DNA of 63,542 nucleotides, the filler included, from Octopus bimaculoides (Eukaryota), in NCBI RefSeq assembly GCF_001194135.2. It is 8 parts of 7 records of this genome, joined end to end, with 100 filler letters (N's around TTAATTAATTAA, not from the genome) between each part and the next. Parts side by side here need not be neighbours in the genome. Positions count along the whole stretch, not along the records: positions 12,951 to 29,618 come from NC_068988.1; 7 more parts are not named here. One strand, written 5' to 3'. The notes below the pieces were generated by a model. The model saw only the letters and a list, made by a program, of their open reading frames with translations, did not search any database and was not told where the DNA came from. Both the position numbers and the translations under genes were made by a program. Shown here one piece after another: positions 8,353-24,379 of this stretch; position 1 is the stretch's first letter, and each line of letters starts with the position of its first letter.

Positions 8353-10401
8353 CATGCTCGGTGCTTAGAGAGCTTGCCTCCCTTGTCAGTCAATAAAATG
8401 GTGTCTATTGTGGCTATGAGTTGCTTTAACTGTTGTTTCTTGCAATACTAGTGCTTTATAGCGCCCTCGGTTGTTTTAGGGACGTGTACATTTTTGTTTT
8501 TCGGTTGAAAAATTTCTAACAGGTCACCCTTATTATATACATATGTATATGTGTGTATGTGTGTATGAGTGTTTCGTCACATGCATAGGAATTTTTAAGT
8601 TCGTTTGATAATCTTTAGAAGTTGCTGTGAATGAATTAATTTTATGTTGATTTCAGCGAAATCTTGACACTGTCTTGAATTTGAGACAGAGAGACAAAGA
8701 GCTGTAGTTGTATATAAAACAAGGTAGTTCATAAAGCTATCCGCGGTATTTTGAATCGCAATATTTACTACAACAATTGCAAGAACAAAATGGCAGATGA
8801 GAAATTTAAACACGAAAAGGAAGTACAGAAACCTATATTACTCATTGTGTAGGAGGCGAAGAGTTAAACTAGCCAAACCTCGCCTATTGCATATTAAATA
8901 TCATAAAATTAGCAACATCTGAGAGTAAAATAGGAAAATTTTCACTGCTAAAAATATTTCTTTTTTTTGCATCTTAACAATGTATAATTAAAACTATCAT
9001 CAAATTGCTGTTAGAAAACAGTCGAATGATAACAGAATAAGCTGTGTTATATGTTTTGCGTGGCCGTGTGGTAAGATGCTTGCTTCCCAACTAAATGGTT
9101 TCGAGTTCAGTCCCACTGCGTGGCACCTTGAGATAGTCTAATGACTGAAACAACTAAAAGATGCACGCACGCATACACACACGCACGCACACGCACGCAC
9201 ATACACACACACATACACACACACATTAAGACAAGCAAACACGCATAGAGCAGAAAAGAGAAGTGGTGTGAGAGAGTACATTTTATTCCATACGTTTACA
9301 AGTGTTTCATAATCTTATTAATTATATACTACATGTTACATCAATATTAACACATATAGGGTATACAAATATATACAAATATATACAAATAAATATATTT
9401 GAGTACCCTTAGATCGAAGGGCACAGATATGGAAGCCAAATATGAGAAGTAACCGACTAATCTTCAGAGCGACACATGGTCCCCCACCACGGCTTGACAA
9501 CCGGCGTTGGTATGTTGATGTCCCCGTAATCTAGCGGTTGAGCAAAAGAGAGTAATAATCCTTTCTACTATAGGCACAAGGCCTGAAATTTACTGGTACT
9601 TAATTTATCGACCCTGAATGGATGAAAGGCAAAGTCGACCTCGGCGGAATTTGAACTCAGAACGCAGCGGCAGACGAAACACCGCTAAGCATTTCGCCCG
9701 GCCTGCTAACGATTCTGCCAGCTTGGGTTTGAGTTGTTCAACTAAACCTTTTAAAGCTGCGTTCCGATATGGCCGCAGTTCAATGACTGAAAGGGAGTAA
9801 ACAATAAGATATGGGACGGCTCATTACCTGATTTCAAATTTTAGCACAAGGCCAGCAATTTCAGGGACGGGTTAAGTCGATCACATCGACTCCAGTGCTT
9901 AACTGATAATTCTTTGGTCGACCGCAAAAGGACGAAAGAAGTCAAACTCGATAGAATTTGACCTCAGNNNNNNNNNNNNNNNNNNNNNNNNNNNNNNNNN
10001 NNNNNNNNNNNNNNNNNNNNNNNNNNNNNNNNNNNNNNNNNNNNNNNNNNNNNNNNNNNNNNNNNNNNNNNNNNNNNNNNNNNNNNNNNNNNNNNNNNNN
10101 NNNNNNNNNNNNNNNNNNNNNNNNNNNNNNNNNNNNNNNNNNNNNNNNNNNNNNNNNNNNNNNNNNNNNNNNNNNNNNNNNNNNNNNNNNNNNNNNNNNN
10201 NNNNNNNNNNNNNNNNNNNNNNNNNNNNNNNNNNNNNNNNNNNNNNNNNNNNNNNNNNNNNNNNNNNNNNNNNNNNNNNNNNNNNNNNNNNNNNNNNNNN
10301 NNNNNNNNNNNNNNNNNNNNNNNNNNNNNNNNNNNNNNNNNNNNNNNNNNNNNNATATATATATATATATATATATATAAATATATATGTATATATATAC
10401 A

Positions 10402-12950: not shown

Positions 12951-12972
12951 TCTATCTATCTATCTGTATGCA

Positions 12973-13041
<69 letters not shown>

Positions 13042-13048
13042 GTATGCA

Positions 13049-13088
<40 letters not shown>

Positions 13089-13281
13089 AGTATATATACG
13101 ATGATCAACTTAGTGGAAAATAATATTTTTCTAAATTTGGTGGGTCTGTATTACATTTAGCCGGGCGATATTTATTGTTAAACCGGCCTGGTTGGGGCGT
13201 GCGCGTGCGCTTGTGTAAGCATATGTGTGTGTTTCTTCTTTTCTGCAGCAAAGAAAAACGGAAAGATTATAGTCAGGTTAA

Positions 13282-13291
13282 ATGACGTCAT
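13282..13291. promoter_or_regulatory. Palindromic CRE/ATF-type site ATGACGTCAT upstream of the metalloprotease-like gene
   Basis: A perfect TGACGTCA palindrome lies about 85 bp 5' of the ATG at 13375. The transcription start is unknown. Confidence 0.25.
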
Positions 13292-13374
13292 AAGAGAAAC
13301 TGTGCTAAATGGGAATATTCCAAGGGTTCGTGATATCGACAGAGTATTTGCTGAGTTTGTAAAAGTGTTTTCAT

Positions 13375-15294
13375 ATGGGGCGATTTCTGGCCTATCTACT
13401 TTTAAGCATTCTTTATTGTTACTTTTGTGAAACAAATGCTGGAAGTCACGGCTCAAAACCCTTTGCTGCCTGGGTATATAATATCAAAATCCCGTATACC
13501 AACAAGACCCAGAATAAAGATGCACTTTATTTTAGGGTTCAAGCAAATAAACATGAAATAATTTTAAAACTGAGAAAATCTTCAAGAACATATGAATCGT
13601 TTGATACGTATATCTTAAATTATAAAGGTTTTCAGAAGAATCACATCCAACATAACGTTACATGTGTTAATACATCTGGTATATACGTCAACGAAAATGG
13701 CTATTTTACAGTTCAATGTAAAAAAGAGCAAACACGAAACGAAACTTTCAAACAATATTTTTTAACTGGAATGTTTTGCTACAATGGTTTCCATTTCGTT
13801 CTTTATCCTGATTTTTTAAAACTCGATGTCGGAAGATTCCAAGGTAAATATGGACACCGGCATACAATACACTCTCTGCAAGGAGCAGCATCACAGAATG
13901 CGTGTGATCGTATTTCAGAGAATAATACGGCTAATTTAAAACCTCCTTATTCACAATCTAGGAAAAAGCGAGAAAACATGGGCTTTGCTAATTTGAATAT
14001 TGAATTATCACTTATACTAGACTATACAATATATGCGCACTTCATGTCGATAATACCACCTTATGTTGAAGACGTAGAAGAAAGAACGAACGAATTATTA
14101 CAATCATATTATAGTAGTCTGATTTCACTGATACATTATATATTCCATTCTCTGACTACTGAAAATTTTTCTTTAAATGTAATATGTAATTACATGATTA
14201 TTACTAAAACGGAACACGTGCACAACTTGGTTCTTGCTGAATCGAAAACAAGGGATCCAAAAGACATTTGGATGCGCTTGAGAAATTGGTTGATTCATTC
14301 AAGCGAGGAATATACTAGCGGTGTGGACCATATAATATTCATAACATTACAAGACATAATTCCATATGTTAAGGCACTTGATTTCGGCAAGGCAAACGGA
14401 ATTTGTTCAAGTGATTCTATAAGCATACTTGCTGAAAGGTTAAGTTTGAGAACAGCTTTTGCTGCAGTCCAGTTAATTGGACGCTCGGTTGGAATACCAT
14501 TTGATACGATTGACACTGAGTGTTCCCCCGAAAACAGATTCACAATGTCTCAACTCCTTGCATTATTCCAGAACACGGATTTAAGCTTAAACCTGTTTTC
14601 CTTTTCAGAATGTTCGAGAGACTTCGTATTAGGTATTGTCAAAAAAGGTCACACCGACAAGAGGTACGCTTGTTTGTGGCGAAGAAGCATAGCGCAAGAG
14701 TACCAGCTTAATACCTTAATCAAACCTGGACAATGGCTCAGCGCGAGTCAACAATGCTATCACAGATTTTTACACGAATCGAATATATACAATTGCGAAT
14801 ATGAGAATTTCAAAACAACAGACAGATTTTGTATCCATATGAAGTGTTACCAGAAAGGCATGTGTATTGGAATGATGCCACTAGAAGGTACAACGTGTGG
14901 CAACGGTAAGTGGTGCATTAAAGGGCACTGTACAACGGAGGGAGACCCACCAAAAATTGATATGGGTTGTTGGTTGGGGGATAAACAACCCGATGTAATC
15001 GATGAGCTTAATATTACGTGTAATTATGCTACATTCGGAAGAAATTATTATTGTTATAATGAATACTTCTTTTCTGTGTGTTGCTGGACTTGTGCTTTGC
15101 TACGCAGGAAAGCAGACAGCTGCACATTCGGGGACAAGCTTGATGGATGTCGAAAAAAACTTTGTAAATATTATGACGATTCAATGAAACAAAATTGCTG
15201 TGAAACCTGTGGACTAGAGGCTATCAGTTCGTCGAATCACCTCAAGACAATTTTATACCTATATATTTTACAATGTATTATTTGGTTTATTTAA
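13375..15294 (+). CDS. Intronless ADAM/ADAMTS-like M12B metalloprotease homolog, predicted catalytically inactive, secreted and probably GPI-anchored
   Basis: Uninterrupted 639-aa ORF in AT-rich DNA. It contains an N-terminal signal peptide (MGRFLAYLLLSILYCYFCETNA), a prodomain with a cysteine-switch-like NACD (C177), and furin site RKKR (aa196-199, nt 13960-13971). M12B motifs: IELSLILDY, DHIIFIT, GICSS, Met-turn RFTMS, FSECS. ADAMTS-type Cys-rich region PGQWLSASQQC...EGTTCGNGKWCIKGHC. Two C-x-x-GDK...CCxTC repeats and a hydrophobic C-terminus follow. The zinc motif position reads QLIGRSVGIPFD. Confidence 0.9.
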   Translation: MGRFLAYLLLSILYCYFCETNAGSHGSKPFAAWVYNIKIPYTNKTQNKDALYFRVQANKHEIILKLRKSSRTYESFDTYILNYKGFQKNHIQHNVTCVNTSGIYVNENGYFTVQCKKEQTRNETFKQYFLTGMFCYNGFHFVLYPDFLKLDVGRFQGKYGHRHTIHSLQGAASQNACDRISENNTANLKPPYSQSRKKRENMGFANLNIELSLILDYTIYAHFMSIIPPYVEDVEERTNELLQSYYSSLISLIHYIFHSLTTENFSLNVICNYMIITKTEHVHNLVLAESKTRDPKDIWMRLRNWLIHSSEEYTSGVDHIIFITLQDIIPYVKALDFGKANGICSSDSISILAERLSLRTAFAAVQLIGRSVGIPFDTIDTECSPENRFTMSQLLALFQNTDLSLNLFSFSECSRDFVLGIVKKGHTDKRYACLWRRSIAQEYQLNTLIKPGQWLSASQQCYHRFLHESNIYNCEYENFKTTDRFCIHMKCYQKGMCIGMMPLEGTTCGNGKWCIKGHCTTEGDPPKIDMGCWLGDKQPDVIDELNITCNYATFGRNYYCYNEYFFSVCCWTCALLRRKADSCTFGDKLDGCRKKLCKYYDDSMKQNCCETCGLEAISSSNHLKTILYLYILQCIIWFI

Positions 15295-15829
15295 ATAGCA
15301 TTAAGATGTTTTCTTAAGTTACCACGAATCGTTTTCAAGAAAACCAAAATGAGGCCTATAAGTGAATCTTTTTATTATGACTGTTTATACATTGTTCTTT
15401 AATTGTACATCACAAACATACGAAGGAGTCTCTCTGTGGCTACCCAACATGCATGACATGCCAGTCAAATTTCCTTCATACCGTACCATAGTTTTAAAAA
15501 AGGAAGGAGAAATTGACAAATTGCTTAGAAAATATAGTCTTAGATACTATTATAAATGCATGCAAGATATTATTACATATGCATGCATACATGTATACTA
15601 TCATAGATTCTGTTATATATGCATGCATGCATACATACGTACATACATATAGAAACGTATACTTATACACGTACATACATATCTGTGTATGTATGCATGT
15701 ATACATGTATGTGTTTATACACACACACACACACATAACTACATGATACATGCTATGTGTGTGTATATATATATAAATGTGTGTGTCGTATATATTTTAT
15801 ATTTGAAAAAAGAAAAAGAATGACTTCAC

Positions 15830-16980
15830 TGGTAGTTCTAATCAGTTTAATTTATTATTTTTTAGAAAGTTAAAGAAGTGATTTTAAATTCTCAATCGCA
15901 TTATTATTTTTTATATTTTTAATAATATAAATTTTACACTTTAGTTTGTAGATCTAGTAAGTTCTTTGTTAACTTGGGTGGGGAGATTTAAAAAAAAAAT
16001 TCCTTGCTAACTTTCTTGCATTAGTTGTCAAATAGATCTGAGGATTTGGGGCTTTGTGATTCTATATATGGGATTTGGGTGTGTTTGGGGGTGGGGTTGG
16101 GGTTTGTTAATTAGTATGGGAGTGAAAGAATGTTGATGAATAATAGATGAAAGGAAGTAATGTTAGAGTGTTTTATGAAGCCATTTGAATAGTTGACCTT
16201 GGGTGAGAAATCTAATTGTCAGATGTTTTCCCAAATTCTTTCTTTTAGCAATTTTCTATGTTTTAGGGGTATGANNNNNNNNNNNNNNNNNNNNNNNNNN
16301 NNNNNNNNNNNNNNNNNNNNNNNNNNNNNNNNNNNNNNNNNNNNNNNNNNNNNNNNNNNNNNNNNNNNNNNNNNNNNNNNNNNNNNNNNNNNNNNNNNNN
16401 NNNNNNNNNNNNNNNNNNNNNNNNNNNNNNNNNNNNNNNNNNNNNNNNNNNNNNNNNNNNNNNNNNNNNNNNNNNNNNNNNNNNNNNNNNNNNNNNNNNN
16501 NNNNNNNNNNNNNNNNNNNNNNNNNNNNNNNNNNNNNNNNNNNNNNNNNNNNNNNNNNTGAATAAAAATAAAGGGTTTTGTATGATAGTGTATAGAGGAA
16601 TATATTATTTAAAAGAGTTCCAACTCTGTCTGATTTTTATGTTTTATTTATATTCTATAAAATTAATGTGGGATATAGGATATGGAATATATAATATAAA
16701 TAGTAAAATGAAATGAAGTATTGAATGTCTTATTGAATATATGAAATATTGAGTATCAAATATTGAGTATCAAATATATAAGGACTAGTATACTTTCCTG
16801 CCTCGTGGCAGTACATCTGTCAGACGGGACCTTGAGTATTTGTATAGGTATGGTGTGTGTTGAGGTACTATATATGTAGGGGTTTATATTGGGCTTGAGG
16901 TGGGAAAAATCAAATACATAACAATAGTCACTCCAAGTTATTTCTCTGAGCTCATTTTCGCTTAGATTTTGCAAGCAACC
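15830..16980 (-). mobile_element. Possible very old APE-type LINE remnant
   Basis: Strong G/T strand skew and weak frame-broken motifs resembling the APE end (TATRQESILVLI) and the pre-RT region (ITKPQILRSI). Interrupted by a gap at 16275-16558. Confidence 0.3.
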
Positions 16981-17016
16981 TATTTCATTCTAATAAGACG
17001 GTTATGGATACAATTT

Positions 17017-18304
17017 AAAGTCCGTAATAAAATAGAAGCCCTCCACCTCCCTGGTTGATATTCCGTCATCGCTTCAATTCAATCGTCTGCTCCTTTCTTG
17101 TGGTAAAAAAAATACTGTTCTTTTCTGTTTTTTTTTTCTTATTAACTTCTCAGTGAAGGCGTGTGGCCTAGTGGTTAGGGCATTGTTCCCACCAGGTGGT
17201 TTGTTGTGTTGTTGAGCAGAACACTTAATTTCATGTTGCTCTGCGTTCACTTCGACATCTTCTGTGCGGCATACCTTGCACTTGCACAGGTAATGTCGCT
17301 TTGATGGCGAGAGGTAATGTACAACATAAACAGCTGATCACTATATACAAATCATCTGTGCAGGTTGTTCAGAAACTAATTACTGAACCGTCTTTCTCGG
17401 ATTATAGACTATCATTAATTAGTCTCACAGATTTTCCTGTTTCAATGCTGTCCGTTGATTAAATCACAACAAACAAGTGAAAGAACTCCAAACAGTTTGT
17501 AAACTTATTGCTTATTGTGTAAATGTGTTTTCTGGAGCATCGACCGTTCAAATTGATGCGATGCCAGATTTCATTACTGGCTGTTTTGTATTCAGAACCA
17601 AGAAATACAACTTACAATTAACTTAGATAAATAGGTTAAGAGTATGTCTGCGTAGTTCAAAGGTTCGCTTCGTCAGTCGTGGATTCCAGTGTTTGCTCTC
17701 CCTCAGTGACACTTGTACGGAAAGCTTTTATTATAACTTCATATGTATTCAATCCTTTTGAGTGAAATCAAGTGGACAGAAACTGCAAGGATATTTAGAA
17801 ATAGAAGGAATATAAAGACGCTGATGATGAATATCAAGATGGCTGGAGAAAAATTCCCGAGGAAAGTGTTCTGCATACCAAATTTATATTGGTAATATTG
17901 ATCTCTACTTAAACGTGGATGTTCTGTTAAAGCAAACTATACTGCGGTAGATCTGAGAGAAATTCTCATGCTGGTCTTTGGTGCAAAATGCACACTTGTT
18001 TATATCGCTAGCGGGGAAATAAACCGCCGCCATCTCGTGATTTCGACCTTCCTTGGTCTCGTCATTGATGGACGCTCGACTGCGAGAGACAGCAGCGACT
18101 CATCTCACCGCCAGCGATATATAGAAATATATACCAAAGTCCGTAATAAAATAGAAGCCCTCCACCTCCCTGGTTGATATTCCGTCATCGCTTCAATTCA
18201 ATCGTCTGCTCCTTTCTTGTGGTAAAAAAAATACTGTTCTTTTCTGTTTTTTTTCTTCTTATTAACTTCTCAGTGAAGGCGTGTGGCCTAGTGGTTAGGG
18301 CATT
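17017..18304 (+). repeat. 168/169-bp near-identical direct repeat pair (17017-17184 and 18136-18304)
   Basis: The copies are identical by eye except within a T-tract (T10CTT vs T8CTTCTT). Confidence 0.92.
17153..17400 (+). mobile_element. tRNA-headed SINE, family D head with a different body
   Basis: Head GTGAAGGCGTGTGGCCTAGTGGTTAGGGC matches the head at 40382. The body is unrelated to family A. The 3' boundary is approximate. Confidence 0.55.
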
Positions 18305-20777
18305 ATATATCTTAAAACTAAATATGTGCTGTAGAGGCTAACTTACCTTTATCTTATCTTTTAATGTTTTCTTGTTTTAGTCATTGGACTAAGCTGGTGC
18401 TGGGGCACGGCCTTGAAACCTTCAGTCGAACAAATCGATCTTAGTACTTATTTTTTAAAAGCCTAGTACTTATTTTATCGGACTCTTTTATTCAATCAAC
18501 TAGATACAAGGACGTAAACAAACCAACACCGGTTGTCAAGTGATGGTGTTTCACACACGCACACACACGCGCACACACGCACACACACATACACACAGAG
18601 ACACAGACACACACACACACACACACACACCACGGGATTCTTCAGCACTTTTCTCATTCATGTCTTGACGGAAAAAAAACAACAATATTATTACAGTAAT
18701 AAAAAAGAAAAAATTCATAAGGGACGTAACTCTGCTACAGCATGGAAGAGTTAATGGCCTTCTAACTATCTATATTTACATGAATATCATTTTACGGTGC
18801 ATTTAAGAACACTAGTTCTTTTTACTACCCAAATTCATATATCAGAATTTATTTGCATTAATTTGGAATTTTCTTACGCAATCAATTAAGAAAAGTTAGT
18901 ACAATTATAGCTTTATGAATACAAGACAAAAATGTTGTTGTCACCTAACAAAAATATGGCTACGTTTTCGTTGTATATAACTTCAGAATGCCGGAAACTA
19001 TTCAGTTTTTGCAAAGAGTTAACATGCAGTTTAGGATTTAAAAAATGAATGAAAATTGACCTGAAGTAACGATAATGATATTCCATAATTTTTTAAAGAA
19101 AGCATAAATAGAACTTATGAAATCCCTTAATTTTATTACTTGAACTCATTCTTCATTATGCCGTATTCGCATGTACTTTCTTATATTGTACTTTTAAGAA
19201 GTGACTTAAGTGTTTCAGAAAGAGTAGCTGAGGCACACCGTAGAAATGTTCCCACGGTTTATCTCAGCTGCTATAAATGTGATTGTTTTTTTATCTTATA
19301 TGAAATAAGTATACGTTCTGCACATTGGTTATGTCATGCAACGGTAAGATATTTTCTGAATTTTGATAATCAACAATATGATGATTTGCCTGAAGCGAAG
19401 TCGATAAAAAGAACACAAATTTCGTAGATATGTCAAATGTAAAAAACAAAAACAAAAGACAAAACAAAAACAAACAAACAAACAAAAATACGTTATCAAA
19501 CATCATGTTGTTACTTCGAACTACAAAGAGATGTTTACACCAAATAAGAATAGTTCAAAGTTTGTATGGGATATTGTTGTGGCCAAGCATGACAATACTG
19601 TCATTGTTATCGTCGTCCGTCATCGCCGTCCGACAGCTACAGACACTAGTTAAAAGTGAGCACCACTACTAGACGCGAATGGCAAGAATTTGTGTCAGTT
19701 CAAGAAAAAGTGGCGTGAAAAAAAAAAAAAAAAAAAACCTTGCTGGGGTCATTTTTGTAATGATGTTTATGAATTGTGTTCGTGCTGTTTATTTGTTTTT
19801 GTATCGGACACAATGATAGAATCAATCCAAGTTCGATTTTTAGGTGTTTTTGGACTGCCTAGTCGTGGCTGTGTGGGAAGAAACTTGCTTCAAAAACCAC
19901 GCGCGCACGCACACACACACACACACACACACATACATACATACATGCGTGATAGATCGCTGACCACTNNNNNNNNNNNNNNNNNNNNNNNNNNNNNNNN
20001 NNNNNNNNNNNNNNNNNNNNNNNNNNNNNNNNNNNNNNNNNNNNNNNNNNNNNNNNNNNNNNNNNNNNNNNNNNNNNNNNNNNNNNNNNNNNNNNNNNNN
20101 NNNNNNNNNNNNNNNNNNNNNNNNNNNNNNNNNNNNNNNNNNNNNNNNNNNNNNNNNNNNNNNNNNNNNNNNNNNNNNNNNNNNNNNNNNNNNNNNNNNN
20201 NNNNNNNNNNNNNNNNNNNNNNNNNNNNNNNNNNNNNNNNNNNNNNNNNNNNNNNNNNNNNNNNNNNNNNNNNNNNNNNNNNNNNNNNNNNNNNNNNNNN
20301 NNNNNNNNNNNNNNNNNNNNNNNNNNNNNNNNNNNNNNNNNNNNNNNNNNNNNNNNNNNNNNNNNNNNNNNNNNNNNNNNNNNNNNNNNNNNNNNNNNNN
20401 NNNNNNNNNNNNNNNNNNNNNNNNNNNNNNNNNNNNNNNNNNNNNNNNNNNNNNNNNNNNNNNNNNNNNNNNNNNNNNNNNNNNNNNNNNNNNNNNNNNN
20501 NNNNNNNNNNNNNNNNNNNNNNNNNNNNNNNNNNNNNNNNNNNNNNNNNNNNNNNNNNNNNNNNNNNNNNNNNNNNNNNNNNNNNNNNNNNNNNNNNNNN
20601 NNNNNNNNNNNNNNNNNNNNNNNNNNNNNNNNNNNNNNNNNNNNNNNNNNNNNNNNNNNNNNNNNNNNNNNNNNNNNNNNNNNNNNNNNNNNNNNNNNNN
20701 NNNNNNNNNNNNNNNNNNNNNNNNNNNNNNNNNNNNNNNNNNNNNNNNNNNNNTATATATATATATATATATATACC

Positions 20778-21681
20778 CAAACGAAGTTAAAAACAAGCAA
20801 AAAGAACAGAAATCATCTGACTGGCAAAAGAAGGCGTTGCATGGTAGATTCCCAAAGATAGTTGCCGCAAATAGTAGTAGTAGTAGTTGTAGTAGTAGTA
20901 GTAGTAGTAGTTGTTGTTGTTGTGATACATGGTTATGATTGCAAAAAGGAAAAGTGAAGAGGGAGACAGAGTTTGTTAGTAGCTGCATAAGATCAAGGAT
21001 TAAGGACTAATTGAATAAAAGCCAAAACAGACAAAAAAAGATGATTCCCAATGTAGATCATGCAAATCAAAAGAGGAAAGCGTTACTCATATAGTAAGTG
21101 AATGTAGCATGCTGGCACAGAAAGAATACAAGAAAAGACATGACAGTCTAGGGAGAGTAATCCACTGGGATCTATGTTGAAAGCTAGGATTTGAACATAC
21201 TGATAAATCGTATGAATATGAACCTAGTAAAGTGCTAGAAAGTAAGAAATAAATGATGTTGTGGGACTTTAATATTCCGACTGACAGAGTAATAAAAGCT
21301 AGAAGACCTGATTTAGTAGTAATAGATAAAGAGAATAGTAAGTGCCAGATAATTGACTTTACAGTCCCAAATAATGAAAACATTAATATGAGAAGTATAT
21401 AAAAGATAACGAAGTACCAGGACCTAATTATTGAATTACAGAGACAATGGAAAGTGCGGGTAAAATGTATTCCACTAGTTATAGGTACATTGGGAACTAT
21501 CCCTAAAGATCTGAACATGTGGATAGAAGAAATAGGAATAAAACCCAGTTTAGTACAGCTCCAGAAAACAGTATTATTAGGGACAGCTAGGATACTTAGG
21601 AGGGTTCTTGGCATCTAAGGTTACTTTTAGCCCGATGTTAGGATTTTTTTCTTTTTTAACAGTCTAATCTGTTGAGTGTAT

Positions 21682-21710
<29 letters not shown>
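20778..21710 (+). mobile_element. 3' portion of a REL-endonuclease non-LTR retrotransposon (R4/Dong-like)
   Basis: Degraded translation gives WQKKALHGRF..KRETESLLVAA, CCHC knuckle CRSCKSKEESVTHIVSEC (21052-21105), KRHDSLGRVIHW, LWDFNIPTDRVIKARRPDLVVIDK..IIDF, IPLVIGTLG, and a stop at 21616-18. A short 3' UTR and a (TGA)n tail follow. A (TAG)n microsatellite interrupts it at about 20872-20921. Confidence 0.88.
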
Positions 21711-21711
<1 letters not shown>

Positions 21712-21713
<2 letters not shown>

Positions 21714-21804
21714 ATGTGGAGATGGACAAGAAACAATGAATCATATTGTCACTGGCTGCTCAGTCCTGGCTAAGAAGTAATATATTCACAAACACGACCG
21801 AATT
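21712..21804 (+). mobile_element. Short fragment of a second REL-type non-LTR element (CCHC region)
   Basis: Translates as ICGDGQETMNHIVTGCSVLAKK*YIHKHDR, the zinc-knuckle/RHD region, but diverged from the neighbouring copy. It sits between (TGA)n and (TTC)n tracts. Confidence 0.7.
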
Positions 21805-21848
21805 CTTCTTTTTCTTCTTCTTCTTCTTCTTCTTCTTCTTCTTCTTCT

Positions 21849-21883
<35 letters not shown>

Positions 21884-22298
21884 TTCCTCTTCTTCTTCTT
21901 CTTCTTCTAATTTACGACCACTCCTAAGCAGTCCTCTCACCCTCCTTGTTGATTCGTCCTCCCTCTTTCACGAGACATTTATCACCTACAATACTATAAG
22001 AATGTAATGCAGTAGGGATTATACTGAACATGCTTTGTTAAATGGTTTCCTCTCTTCCCCAGTTGTTGTTTGTTTCTTTTTTCCCTTTGTTCACCTTGTC
22101 TCGCTCTGTCTTGTTCACATTGAATCCGGTATGGTGTGGTCTATATATATATATTCATATAGTTTTTAACAAGCATTCTCCTAATTTAATACGAATCAGG
22201 TTGAAGTGATTCCGGTGCAGTGAGAGATAGGGGCAATCTTGTATCTTGGACATTTGTTCGCGGAGCAATGTCCTTAAACCAGTACCCCTTAAAATGGC

Positions 22299-22340
<42 letters not shown>

Positions 22341-22599
22341 AATAATGAGTTCTTTATTAACCACAAAGGGTTTAGATTAAGAAAAAACATGGAGATTACA
22401 GGACAAAACAAAGAATGTGTGTGTGTGTATGTGTGTGAATTTGTGTTGTTGTGAGGGTTTTGCGTGTAAACAAGATTAACATAATAAAAGAAAAAAAATC
22501 AACAATGTGTAATCCTCAAAAGAGTGGAGACGTTCGAGGGATACTCATGGAAAAAAAACCCTTGTAAAATCATGGGTTTTCTTTTCTCCAACTATAGGC

Positions 22600-22663
<64 letters not shown>

Positions 22664-23454
22664 CCATTCTTTTATTGGCCACAAGGGCTGTTCGATTTGT
22701 TCGACGTCGTAAGCGACGGAGTGTCAACAACATATCCTGGCAGATCAATAAAATATATCTAACAATATACGTGTAGGCGTGGCTGCGTGAAAAGAAGCTT
22801 GCTTTCCAGCCACATGTTCCGGGTTCAATCCCACTGCGTGGTACCTTCGACAAGTGTCTTCTACTACAAGAGAGAGCATGAGGGACAGAAACAAAGGGAG
22901 TGAGGAGAAGGGAGAAGGAACACGAAAGCTAGTAGGGAGTGGAAGAAAGACAGGGGACAGCAAAGAACGAGGGGGAGAAACGGAAAATAAAGAGGGTTAT
23001 AAAGGGATAGAGAAAACAGAGTGTGGAGGCACAGAAATTATAAATACATAATAAGAACTTACTGTGGACAAGGCTGCGAGGCGTTCGGTTATAGATAAAT
23101 AAAAAATACACATTAAGTACAGGATATCACCAACGAGCGAAAAACACGTAAACACACGGGACAAAATACGTAGTTGGTGATGTCCTGTACTTAATGTGCA
23201 TTATATATATATATATGTATGTATATATCTATGTTTATATATATATATATCTATGTTTATATCTTTGTCTTTGTGCCTATGTTTGTCCCCCATCACCGCT
23301 TAACACTCGATGTTGGTGTGTTTACGTTGCTGTAACTAGCGGTTCGGAAAAAGAGACAGATAGAATAGATCTCGAAGGTTTTCCTCCATTTGGGGAATTT
23401 TTCTTTAATTAGAACTTTTTTTGTTTTTGGTTTTGCACGATTTTTTAAATGTAA

Positions 23455-23880
23455 TCCCACACTGGCAGAATCGGTGAGGATGTTTAAGAATATCTGTTCC
23501 GGCTTCATGCTGAGTTCAAATTTCGCTGAGGTTGACTTTGCTTTATATCCTTTAGGGCGTGATAAAATAAGTACCATTTGAGCACTGGGGTCCATGTAAT
23601 CGACTTAACCCTCCTACTAAATTTCAAGCCTTGTACCTATAGCAGAAAATATCAGCAGCAGTAGCGGCGAACTAGCAGAATCATCGTCAGCACGCTGGTC
23701 AAAATCCTTCGCGGTATTTCCTGCTTCTTTATGTTATAAAATCAAATTTCACCAAAGTCGACTTTCAACCTTTCAGGGTTGATAAAATAAGTATCTGTTG
23801 CATATTGATGTTGATATAACCGACTAGCCTTCTCCTCTAAAAATTTCAGGCCTTGTGCCCATAGTAGAAAGGATCGTCAT

Positions 23881-23911
<31 letters not shown>

Positions 23912-23960
23912 AGTAGTAGCATGAAAGACGAGTTGGCAGAGCCGTTAGCACGCTGGGAAA
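23455..23960 (+). mobile_element. Tandem cluster of family B SINEs (two near-complete copies plus a head fragment)
   Basis: Repeated CTGGCAGAATCG..GAGTTCAAATT..GTTGACTTTGC..GATAAAATAAGTACC..GCCTTGTGCC modules separated by CAT/CAG triplet tracts. Confidence 0.75.
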
Positions 23961-24267
23961 ACAATGGAAAAAAAAATCCTCTGTTTGCCGTCGTTTGTGT
24001 TTTTATTTTAATATTGTAAACTTTTATTTGAAGAAAATGATTGTAAAAGGAAAATTGAATGAACGAGTATCAATCAAGTTTCCTGTTGCTGCTTCTGTTT
24101 CTAAAATTGCCTTTGCGTTTGTCCCACAATATAATTTTAGTTAGCCTCTTAATAATGTTAGTTGAGGTTAAATATGTTGATATTAAAAATATTATTGCTT
24201 TTATTACGCTGCATATTTGGAGCAGAGGTAACATCGCTTAAATAGCTGTGACTGAAGAAATGCTTGC

Positions 24268-24328
24268 GTGTCGCAATCTGGGTAGGTGTCGCAATTTGGG
24301 TAGGTGTCGTAATCTGGGTAGGTGTCGC
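24268..24328 (+). repeat. 18-bp tandem repeat, about 3.4 copies
   Basis: Unit GTGTCGCAATCTGGGTAG. Confidence 0.9.
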
Positions 24329-24379
24329 TGCGAGCTGATTTTAAGTGTATATATACCATTTGTCTACAGCGAGAAATAG

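Follow-up and report, generated by a model that had tools for sequence, protein, structure and literature searches.

An intronless octopod gene for an ADAMTS-type protease-like protein without catalytic residues

A single-exon gene of Octopus bimaculoides very probably encodes an ADAMTS-type pseudoprotease: a secreted, furin-processed and probably membrane-tethered protein of an intronless octopod branch that would act by binding. The gene lies in the window, which is the whole stretch of DNA analysed here (63,542 nucleotides, filler included, joined from eight parts of the O. bimaculoides assembly GCF_001194135.2). The piece in question spans positions 12951–29618 (NC_068988.1), and O. bimaculoides is organism A of the RNA and DNA runs used below. 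The gene has the properties by which a pseudoenzyme is recognized. Its catalytic residues have been lost, its open reading frame (ORF) is under purifying selection, and it is expressed.

A degenerate zinc site in an ADAMTS-type fold

In the frame of the ORF, positions 14461–14505 read A363-A-V-Q-L-I-G-R-S-V-G-I-P-F-D377. The active metzincin motif HExxHxxGxxH(D) is absent, all three zinc-binding histidines and the catalytic glutamate being replaced (H>Q366, codon CAG; E>L367, TTA; H>R370, CGC; H>F376, TTT). The ADAMTS-5 counterpart of Q366–D377 is HEIGHLLGLSHD. Searched with phmmer, the PDB yielded ADAMTS-5, -1 and -13 as matches (E 1e-6 to 3e-5) over their catalytic and disintegrin-like domains, and 'afaavqligrsvgipfdt' was aligned with 'afTVAHEIGHLLGLSHDD' of ADAMTS-5. 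Gly369, Gly373, Asp377 and Met391 are retained around the dead site. An alignment of 114 family sequences supplied the consensus, the conservation columns and the input to AlphaFold2; its consensus at the site is AAHELGHSLGAxHDG...YIMA. The columns of D377, C383 and M391 are at least 90% conserved in the family and the window protein retains all three residues. C344, C433, C461 and others are invariant and all present, and 24 conserved cysteines are kept.

The motif is identical in O. sinensis and carries V372I in species 3 (QLIGRS[V/I]GIPFD), a third octopod represented by transcript contigs (dead gene L003 297–2219; active paralogue L014 462–2465). In three more related species, V372L, found in two of them, is the only motif change among the differences listed. 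Assembly error was rejected as the cause of the loss: four DNA runs, independent of one another, and one RNA run gave contigs with 0 differences from the gene sequence, none of them carrying an intact HExxH. Restoration of the motif by RNA editing was likewise rejected, as adenosine-to-inosine changes cannot recreate His or Glu at any of the four codons. With three His and the Glu replaced, the dead copies should neither bind a catalytic zinc nor activate water and, to judge from its residues, the protein cannot be a metzincin-type protease. Nor is a canonical or a conserved alternative metal site apparent, since Gln, Leu, Arg and Phe stand here and different residues in each paralogue. The first-pass annotation had reported the loss of the four residues within a 639-codon frame, and the retention of G369, G373, D377, the Met-turn and flanking cysteines. 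Translation, the PDB alignment and the DNA and RNA contigs bear out the former; the family alignment bears out the latter.

The disintegrin-like domain that follows the protease-like domain (table 1) is of ADAMTS type, as in ADAMTS proteins. Their further hallmarks, at least one TSP1 repeat and a Cys-rich/spacer region, are lacking: TSP_1 and ADAM_spacer gave no Pfam hit at E <= 1, and TSP1 was likewise not found in the paralogues or the wider family. Pfam matched only ADAMTS_CR_2 (PF17771, cut-off 27.3 bits) on the whole protein and left Reprolysin (PF01421) unmatched; the isolated protease-like domain reached 17.6 bits, under the Reprolysin cut-off of 20.8. Among the Cys modules of the family, Pfam PLAC is the commonest match, a weak one (9 of 26 modules, best E 0.024), and it matches neither of the window protein's own two. 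A profile of the Cys modules run against PDB sequences returned a chance match only.

The 114-sequence alignment was used for AlphaFold2 after an alignment of the three orthologues had given a predicted local distance difference test score (pLDDT) of 31. The resulting model is of ADAMTS type, with pLDDT 78 overall, 85–96 across residues 200–530, and a predicted template modelling score (pTM) of 0.71. Its best Foldseek matches are the catalytic and disintegrin-like domains of ADAMTS-1, -5, -4 and -13 (ADAMTS-1 2jih_A, E 3e-15, template modelling score 0.77). ADAMTS proteins rank ahead of snake-venom enzymes and ADAMs, with ADAM22 at rank 49. An ADAM-type identity was rejected on these fold matches, on the ADAMTS-type disintegrin-like domain and on the lack of ADAM disintegrin, Cys-rich and EGF Pfam domains. 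Of the initial label 'ADAM/ADAMTS-like', the ADAMTS half stands, as a branch that is TSP1-less and MIG-17-like, and the ADAM half falls. The domain search proposed with that label recovered the ADAMTS-type disintegrin-like domain and not reprolysin. The furin site it named, R196-K-K-R199, is indeed kept. The cysteine-switch-like Cys fared otherwise: C177 is conserved among the three orthologues only, being absent both from P0004 and P0008 among the paralogues and from P0006 and P0160, the active sisters. It does not characterize the family, and a role as a switch is not supported.

At the C-terminus, SSS618–620 and the hydrophobic ILYLYILQCIIWFI look like a glycosylphosphatidylinositol (GPI)-anchor signal or a tail anchor. 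The hydrophobic part is 14 residues long and no cytoplasmic part follows it.

Constraint and expression

Three octopus species have the ORF intact, and colinear copies occur in further species, in which those indels that were seen are in-frame or compensated. The orthologue of O. sinensis (XP_029639699.1, 'ADAMTS18-like') is 83% identical to the window protein and that of species 3, 72%. Ratios of non-synonymous to synonymous substitution (dN/dS, ω) were obtained by the Nei–Gojobori method in the three pairwise comparisons among these three full orthologues. Whole-gene values are 0.68, 0.57 and 0.47, with P for ω<1 of 0.043, 1.7e-4 and 1.8e-7, respectively. Of 2,000 ORFs simulated under neutrality, none stayed open, even at 10% divergence. 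Together with the colinear transcript described below, these results uphold the earlier proposal of a pseudo-protease under selection as opposed to a pseudogene.

Selection is uneven along the protein. The protease-like domain overall is almost neutral, and constraint falls on the active-site helix with the Met-turn, the disintegrin-like domain and the Cys modules (table 1). Values for the latter three come from the two species-3 comparisons, as O. bimaculoides and O. sinensis differ by too few substitutions per segment. An active paralogue provides a matched control in the same three species at similar dS. Its catalytic-domain ω is 0.07–0.10, and the dead gene has accumulated about 10 times more amino-acid change (dN) in this domain (Fisher P 8e-5 to 2e-11). 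The propeptides of the two have similar ω. Overall protein identity across the three species is 72–84% for the dead gene and 91–94% for the active one. Within the dead gene, the ratio of non-synonymous to synonymous differences per site (pN/pS) exceeds 1 at residues 211–255, 286–330 and 406–435.

Transcription is documented by one RNA contig (table 1). This contig does not fix the ends of the transcribed region, and its 3' side enters low-complexity sequence. About 17 RNA runs of O. bimaculoides were sampled: X2, two others of the same study, eleven further runs and three deep runs from 2026. X2 is the sole positive. The transcript is absent from the other two runs of its study and from the eleven further runs (share of words 0.00), and the three deep runs held 0 reads for the gene among about 12 million examined in each. 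In species 3, the dead gene's transcript was seen in four runs, one of which also held the active paralogue, and colinear RNA fragments occur in runs of another species. Given the X2 contig and the other O. bimaculoides runs without a transcript, expression is real but tightly restricted. Both the active paralogue (L014) and the dead gene (L003) were assembled as transcripts from species-3 run SRR11869384, and the two may be co-expressed.

Family, origin and genomic surroundings

An exhaustive HMMER search collected 389 relatives, of which the named ones belong to chitons, gastropods, bivalves and cephalopods plus one bryozoan. Members share a propeptide, an M12B domain and ADAMTS_CR_2, followed by one to many pairs of Cys modules; many end in a hydrophobic tail or transmembrane segment. 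About a fifth of the family representatives lack HExxH, some of them being fragments that do not cover the motif. Dead motifs occur outside cephalopods in Saccostrea ('ADAMTS19-like', XP_061177722.1), Sinanodonta (KAL3872408.1), Lymnaea (CAL1548554.1) and Bulinus (KAH9487982.1). The motifs read QELGRSLG (oyster), HYIARSMG (unionid), QQVARSLG, RELGQSLS (Lymnaea). As the replacement patterns differ between classes and the dead members stand in different places in the tree, loss of predicted activity has recurred independently across molluscan classes.

Certain replacements also recur. In independent dead lineages (P0033, P0063, P0072, P0075, P0085, P0108–P0110, P0113, P0136 and P0140), Gln repeatedly takes the place of the first His and Arg that of the second (Q-E/Q-x-x-R). 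Both residues are single-nucleotide neighbours of His. The Arg, placed where the zinc would have been bound, might act as a substitute for the cation.

Within octopods, the window gene belongs to a dead clade of at least four paralogue lineages (82% bootstrap), in keeping with the lineage-specific family first suspected. Its closest paralogues, P0004, P0005, P0007 and P0008 (O. sinensis), are 25–33% identical to it and all dead, with the motifs YILAVSFGIKED, QLIAYNIG[I/V][E/N]FD and KMIAQNIGLTAD. An active lineage from Argonauta and Octopus is sister to this clade (100% bootstrap for the two together). It comprises GAB1611091.1 of Argonauta hians, XP_014768561.1 of O. bimaculoides ('metalloprotease mig-17') and XP_029657283.2 of O. 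sinensis. Its motif is HELGHSLG[I/V]LHD, which in the O. bimaculoides copy reads HELGHSLGVLHD. On this tree, motif loss dates to the ancestor of the dead clade. Among octopods, dead copies have the hydrophobic tail and active copies do not. A homologue search by word index, made from an alignment of six paralogues, returned only the three known orthologues.

Octopod members are intronless, active or dead alike (the window gene, P0004, P0005, P0006, P0008, P0160 and P0171), whereas gastropod homologues have many exons: at least 12 coding exons over 43 kb in Patella and at least 15 over 29 kb in Lymnaea. This difference suggests that the octopod branch originated as a retrogene. The pattern expected of one, an intronless coding sequence with many-exon relatives outside the lineage, is present, and no multi-exon cephalopod parent gene was identified. 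Two of the dead paralogues, P0004 and P0005 (L006 10001–11887 and L009 10001–11440; ENA ERZ21867824 ctg111803l), form a tandem of like orientation with a spacing of about 20 kb, in surroundings that include transposon-derived ORFs (RVT_1, rve, DUF1759, HTH_48). The N-terminal part of P0005 is found in an upstream ORF (9466–9831), and the called 479-amino-acid product is truncated or frame-shifted.

Several known systems invite comparison. Caenorhabditis elegans MIG-17 consists of signal sequence, prodomain, metalloprotease, disintegrin and C-terminal PLAC (SS-Pro-MP-DI-PLAC), without TSP1 repeats (PMC4856095). Going by this description of its layout, the octopus family has the signal, propeptide with furin site, metalloprotease and disintegrin parts in common with it. 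The active O. bimaculoides sister carries its name at NCBI. According to PMC11232982, MIG-17 works through its catalytic activity. The window protein, in contrast, lacks the catalytic residues and has two PLAC-like modules, the family's Pfam PLAC matches being weak, and a hydrophobic C-terminal tail. ADAMTS-1, -4, -5 and -13 are its best matches in sequence and structure, with the ADAMTS-type disintegrin-like domain, cysteine framework and Met-turn in common; unlike them it lacks TSP1, the Cys-rich/spacer region and the zinc site, and identity is 16–21%.

In ADAM11, ADAM22, ADAM23 and UNC-71/ADM-1 of C. elegans, the M12B fold is intact and HExxH degenerate. These pseudoproteases serve in protein–protein binding, and the surface by which ADAM22 takes hold of LGI1 is not its pseudo-active site (PMC11266112). 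As dead M12B proteins that act by binding, they may be the best functional analogy for the window protein. They differ from it in being type-I membrane proteins with ADAM disintegrin, Cys-rich and EGF domains and a cytoplasmic tail; the window protein is of ADAMTS type and its loss of activity is independent. ADAMTSL proteins and papilin are non-catalytic ADAMTS relatives that bind in the matrix, some with PLAC; ADAMTSLs have TSP1 and spacer modules and no propeptide or protease domain. The window protein, also a non-catalytic ADAMTS relative, keeps its protease domain whole, though dead, and is devoid of TSP1 repeats. The dead Saccostrea, Sinanodonta, Lymnaea and Bulinus members share its family, architecture and degenerate HExxH, with the same recurring exchanges of the first His for Gln and of the second for Arg. 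They occupy other tree positions and molluscan classes, and none has been characterized. M12B pseudoproteases are well known among the ADAMs; as to ADAMTS, a 2024 review of metallopeptidase pseudoenzymes names the group once, in a list of metzincin families (PMC11266112). Our search of the literature on inactive molluscan ADAMTS, cephalopod metalloproteinase retrogenes and octopus ADAMTS found no description of the octopod clade or of recurrent dead members. The pseudoprotease as a kind is already known; a full-length example from the ADAMTS branch appears not to have been described before.

Table 1. Features of the window gene, with selection values by segment. Positions count along the window.
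Feature	Position	Strand	Remarks
CRE (cAMP response element)-like octamer, perfect palindrome, TGACGTCA	13283–13290	+	4 nt 5' of RNA contig start (13294)
Transcribed region	13294–15835	+	single colinear RNA contig, run X2; 2,545 nt; word depth 89; no intron; 0 differences
Complete single-exon coding sequence	13375–15294	+	639 codons plus stop; sole long ORF of the piece; orthologues 642 and 640 amino acids
Signal-peptide-like hydrophobic N-terminus, residues 1–23, MGRFLAYLLLSILYCYFCETNAG	13375–13443	+	mean Kyte–Doolittle hydropathy 1.66 over residues 5–19; conserved in orthologues; read from sequence
Propeptide, residues 24–199	13444–13971	+	beta-rich; modelled with low to moderate confidence; ω about 0.5–0.6
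Furin-type site R196-K-K-R199	13960–13971	+	R196, K198 and R199 invariant in six paralogues; R199 at least 90% in family
M12B (adamalysin/ADAMTS-type) metalloprotease-like domain, residues 200–450	13972–14724	+	fold kept, catalytically dead; ω 0.65–0.84
Protease-like domain, N-terminal half, residues 196–345			pN/pS about 0.7–1.5
Active-site helix and Met-turn, residues 355–395			ω 0.21–0.29 (two species-3 comparisons)
Degenerate zinc-binding/catalytic motif QLIGRSVGIPFD (Q366–D377, for HExxHxxGxxHD)	14470–14505	+	on predicted active-site helix H359–372
Met-turn methionine M391 (FTMS, aligned to family YIMA)	14545–14547	+	column at least 90% conserved
ADAMTS-type disintegrin-like domain (ADAMTS_CR_2, PF17771, residues 451–520)	14725–14940	+	E 1.1e-12, 48.6 bits; ω 0.20–0.26 (two species-3 comparisons)
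Cys module 1 (C532...C569-C570-x2-C573), PLAC-like six-Cys	14968–15093	+	pLDDT 82–94
Cys module 2 (C583-x8-C592-x4-C597-x10-C608-C609-x2-C612), family 'CEYGD' module, PLAC-like	15121–15210	+	
Cys modules			ω 0.23–0.34 (two species-3 comparisons)
C-terminal tail, SSS618–620 then hydrophobic ILYLYILQCIIWFI	15220–15291	+	identical in O. sinensis; one change in species 3

An in-frame stop lies five codons 5' of the ATG. The palindromic octamer upstream of the contig start is possibly a core promoter element of the retrogene; the 5' flank that holds it is about 82% conserved with respect to O. sinensis. A polypyrimidine tract followed by CAG (TTCTTCTTTTCTGCAG, 13233–13248), about 46 nt upstream of the contig start, resembles a 3' splice acceptor, and a non-coding 5' exon further upstream is possible. 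No spliced contig for the gene was seen among the RNA contigs. On the other side, the first 185 nt of the 3' untranslated region (15295–15479 versus L001 7930–8114) reach 94.6% identity in the comparison of O. bimaculoides with O. sinensis. They are thus more alike than the coding sequence (about 92%), which suggests a conserved regulatory element.

The gene is flanked, at 12951–13164 and 15519–15946, by simple and low-complexity repeats of high copy number, (TCTA)n and CA/TA-rich. Their word depths run from thousands to hundreds of thousands, and they cause many spurious joints in read and contig layouts. Assembly gaps at 16275–16558 (284 N) and 19969–20753 (785 N) inflate mechanical ORFs; those spanning them, such as 19690–20790, were rejected as genes, since their length comes from the N runs. 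Microsatellites ((CA)n, (TTC)n, (AAT)n, (TATG)n and short minisatellites) are all that 18552–29056 holds besides ORFs not exceeding 175 amino acids. Other ORFs of the piece gave no Pfam match. No second family member occurs in the piece, nor within 6 kb of the O. sinensis orthologue.

Alternatives, proposed history and significance

Several points count against reading the window gene as a pseudoprotease that acts by binding. The protease-like domain overall is hard to separate statistically from neutral (ω 0.65–0.84, P = 0.03–0.23) and could be a decaying spacer, with function carried by the C-terminal modules only. With three full orthologues in the dN/dS comparisons, relaxed and diversifying selection are inseparable. 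The signal peptide, furin cleavage and GPI or tail anchor are read from the sequence. The first of these points leads to an alternative in which only the disintegrin-like domain, PLAC-like modules and tail function, the protease-like domain being a degenerating passenger in the same exon that is needed for folding or secretion. Such a division of labour would fit the near-neutral domain, above all its N-terminal half, beside ω of 0.2–0.34 in the C-terminal modules, and the ten-fold dN relative to the active paralogue. It sits poorly with the retention of the domain's cysteines, D318–H319, D377, M391 and the constrained helix across paralogues of 25–33% identity. Moreover, at least four paralogue lineages have all kept the domain free of eroding deletions, and the model is confident over it; we consider the passenger explanation unlikely. 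Somewhat easier to entertain, while still doubtful, is diversifying selection on a recognition surface, in an arms race of saliva or venom or of reproduction, in place of relaxed constraint. The three stretches with pN/pS above 1 would be its footprint, although none is significantly above 1 with three sequences. The extremely tissue-restricted expression also fits it. Reprolysin (M12B) paralogues specific to the posterior salivary gland (PSG) are reported from O. bimaculoides and C. minor (PMC7656900), and an 'ADAM family mig-17-like' protein is tabulated for the salivary gland of a predatory snail (PMC5519703). The PSG paralogues bear no gene identifiers, however, and their identity with the window gene could not be verified.

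The two remaining alternatives would deny the protein either its function or its inactivity. A recently inactivated gene turning into a pseudogene, or a processed pseudogene, could be imagined for an intronless sequence whose whole-gene ω is high for a conserved gene. Yet orthologues at dS up to 0.33 carry the same dead motif and the paralogues altered forms of it, all with open frames; neutral simulations never keep the ORF open; indels respect the frame; the gene is transcribed at depth 89; and the active sister is equally intronless. A recent pseudogene is refuted by the intact orthologue frames, ω<1, simulations and transcription, and the pseudogene explanation as a whole is scarcely credible. 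Unconventional metal sites occur in other enzyme families. On that precedent, the window protein might still be a protease with other residues as metal ligands and general base, D377 and the Met-turn remaining in a cleft whose architecture is probably preserved in the model. Against this, the usual zinc ligands are His, Glu, Asp and Cys, not Gln, Leu, Arg or Phe, and an aliphatic Leu stands where the general base was. The paralogues differ at the same positions (Y/I/V/E, Q/L/Y/F, K/M/Q/A), so that no alternative site is conserved, and constraint on the domain has fallen 10-fold. Residual proteolysis of this kind is thus very improbable.

Under the preferred reading of a binding pseudoprotease, the simplest history would be as follows. 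(i) A family member was retroposed in the octopod, or an earlier cephalopod, ancestor. (ii) The retrocopy duplicated, P0004 and P0005 being still in tandem, and one copy stayed an active protease (XP_014768561.1). (iii) A single loss of the catalytic site would then have followed, in the dead clade's ancestor. (iv) After motif loss, constraint on most of the protease-like surface presumably relaxed about 10-fold. (v) The fold, 24 conserved cysteines, central helix, Met-turn, disintegrin-like domain and Cys modules would have stayed under purifying selection. (vi) The protein would now act through binding instead of cutting. A function of this kind for a folded extracellular protein is suggested by what is conserved, namely the cysteines, helix, disintegrin-like domain, PLAC-like modules, furin site and tail. 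Its likeliest role, in one specialized tissue, is to keep a matrix or ligand partner bound at the cell surface or to compete with the active paralogue for substrate. The hydrophobic tail of dead octopod copies, which the active ones lack, suggests cell-surface attachment of the dead proteins and a soluble active enzyme. A salivary-gland setting is plausible in the light of the PSG reprolysins and the snail table, and is not proven.

Pseudoenzymes occur in most large protease families, so the existence of one more is unsurprising by itself and of moderate interest. The octopod case offers a full-length ADAMTS-type pseudoprotease and its active sister gene in one genome. The order of events (retroposition, duplication, motif loss) is clear, the release of constraint on the catalytic domain is measurable at about 10-fold, and independent losses run in parallel in other molluscan classes. 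The genes are therefore a convenient system for the question of why a dead protease fold is kept. If the salivary-gland lead is true, they would add a non-enzymatic component to the biology of cephalopod saliva. A bolder conjecture, which we regard as speculative and improbable, is that a single MIG-17-like retrocopy gave rise to a set of octopod surface-tethered dead proteases with the cleft under diversifying selection. These would serve as traps or regulators beside the active paralogue in a specialized secretory organ, possibly the PSG or venom gland. Were this so, then together with the dead oyster, unionid and pulmonate lineages the mollusc family would be a repeated natural experiment in turning an ADAMTS protease into a binding protein.

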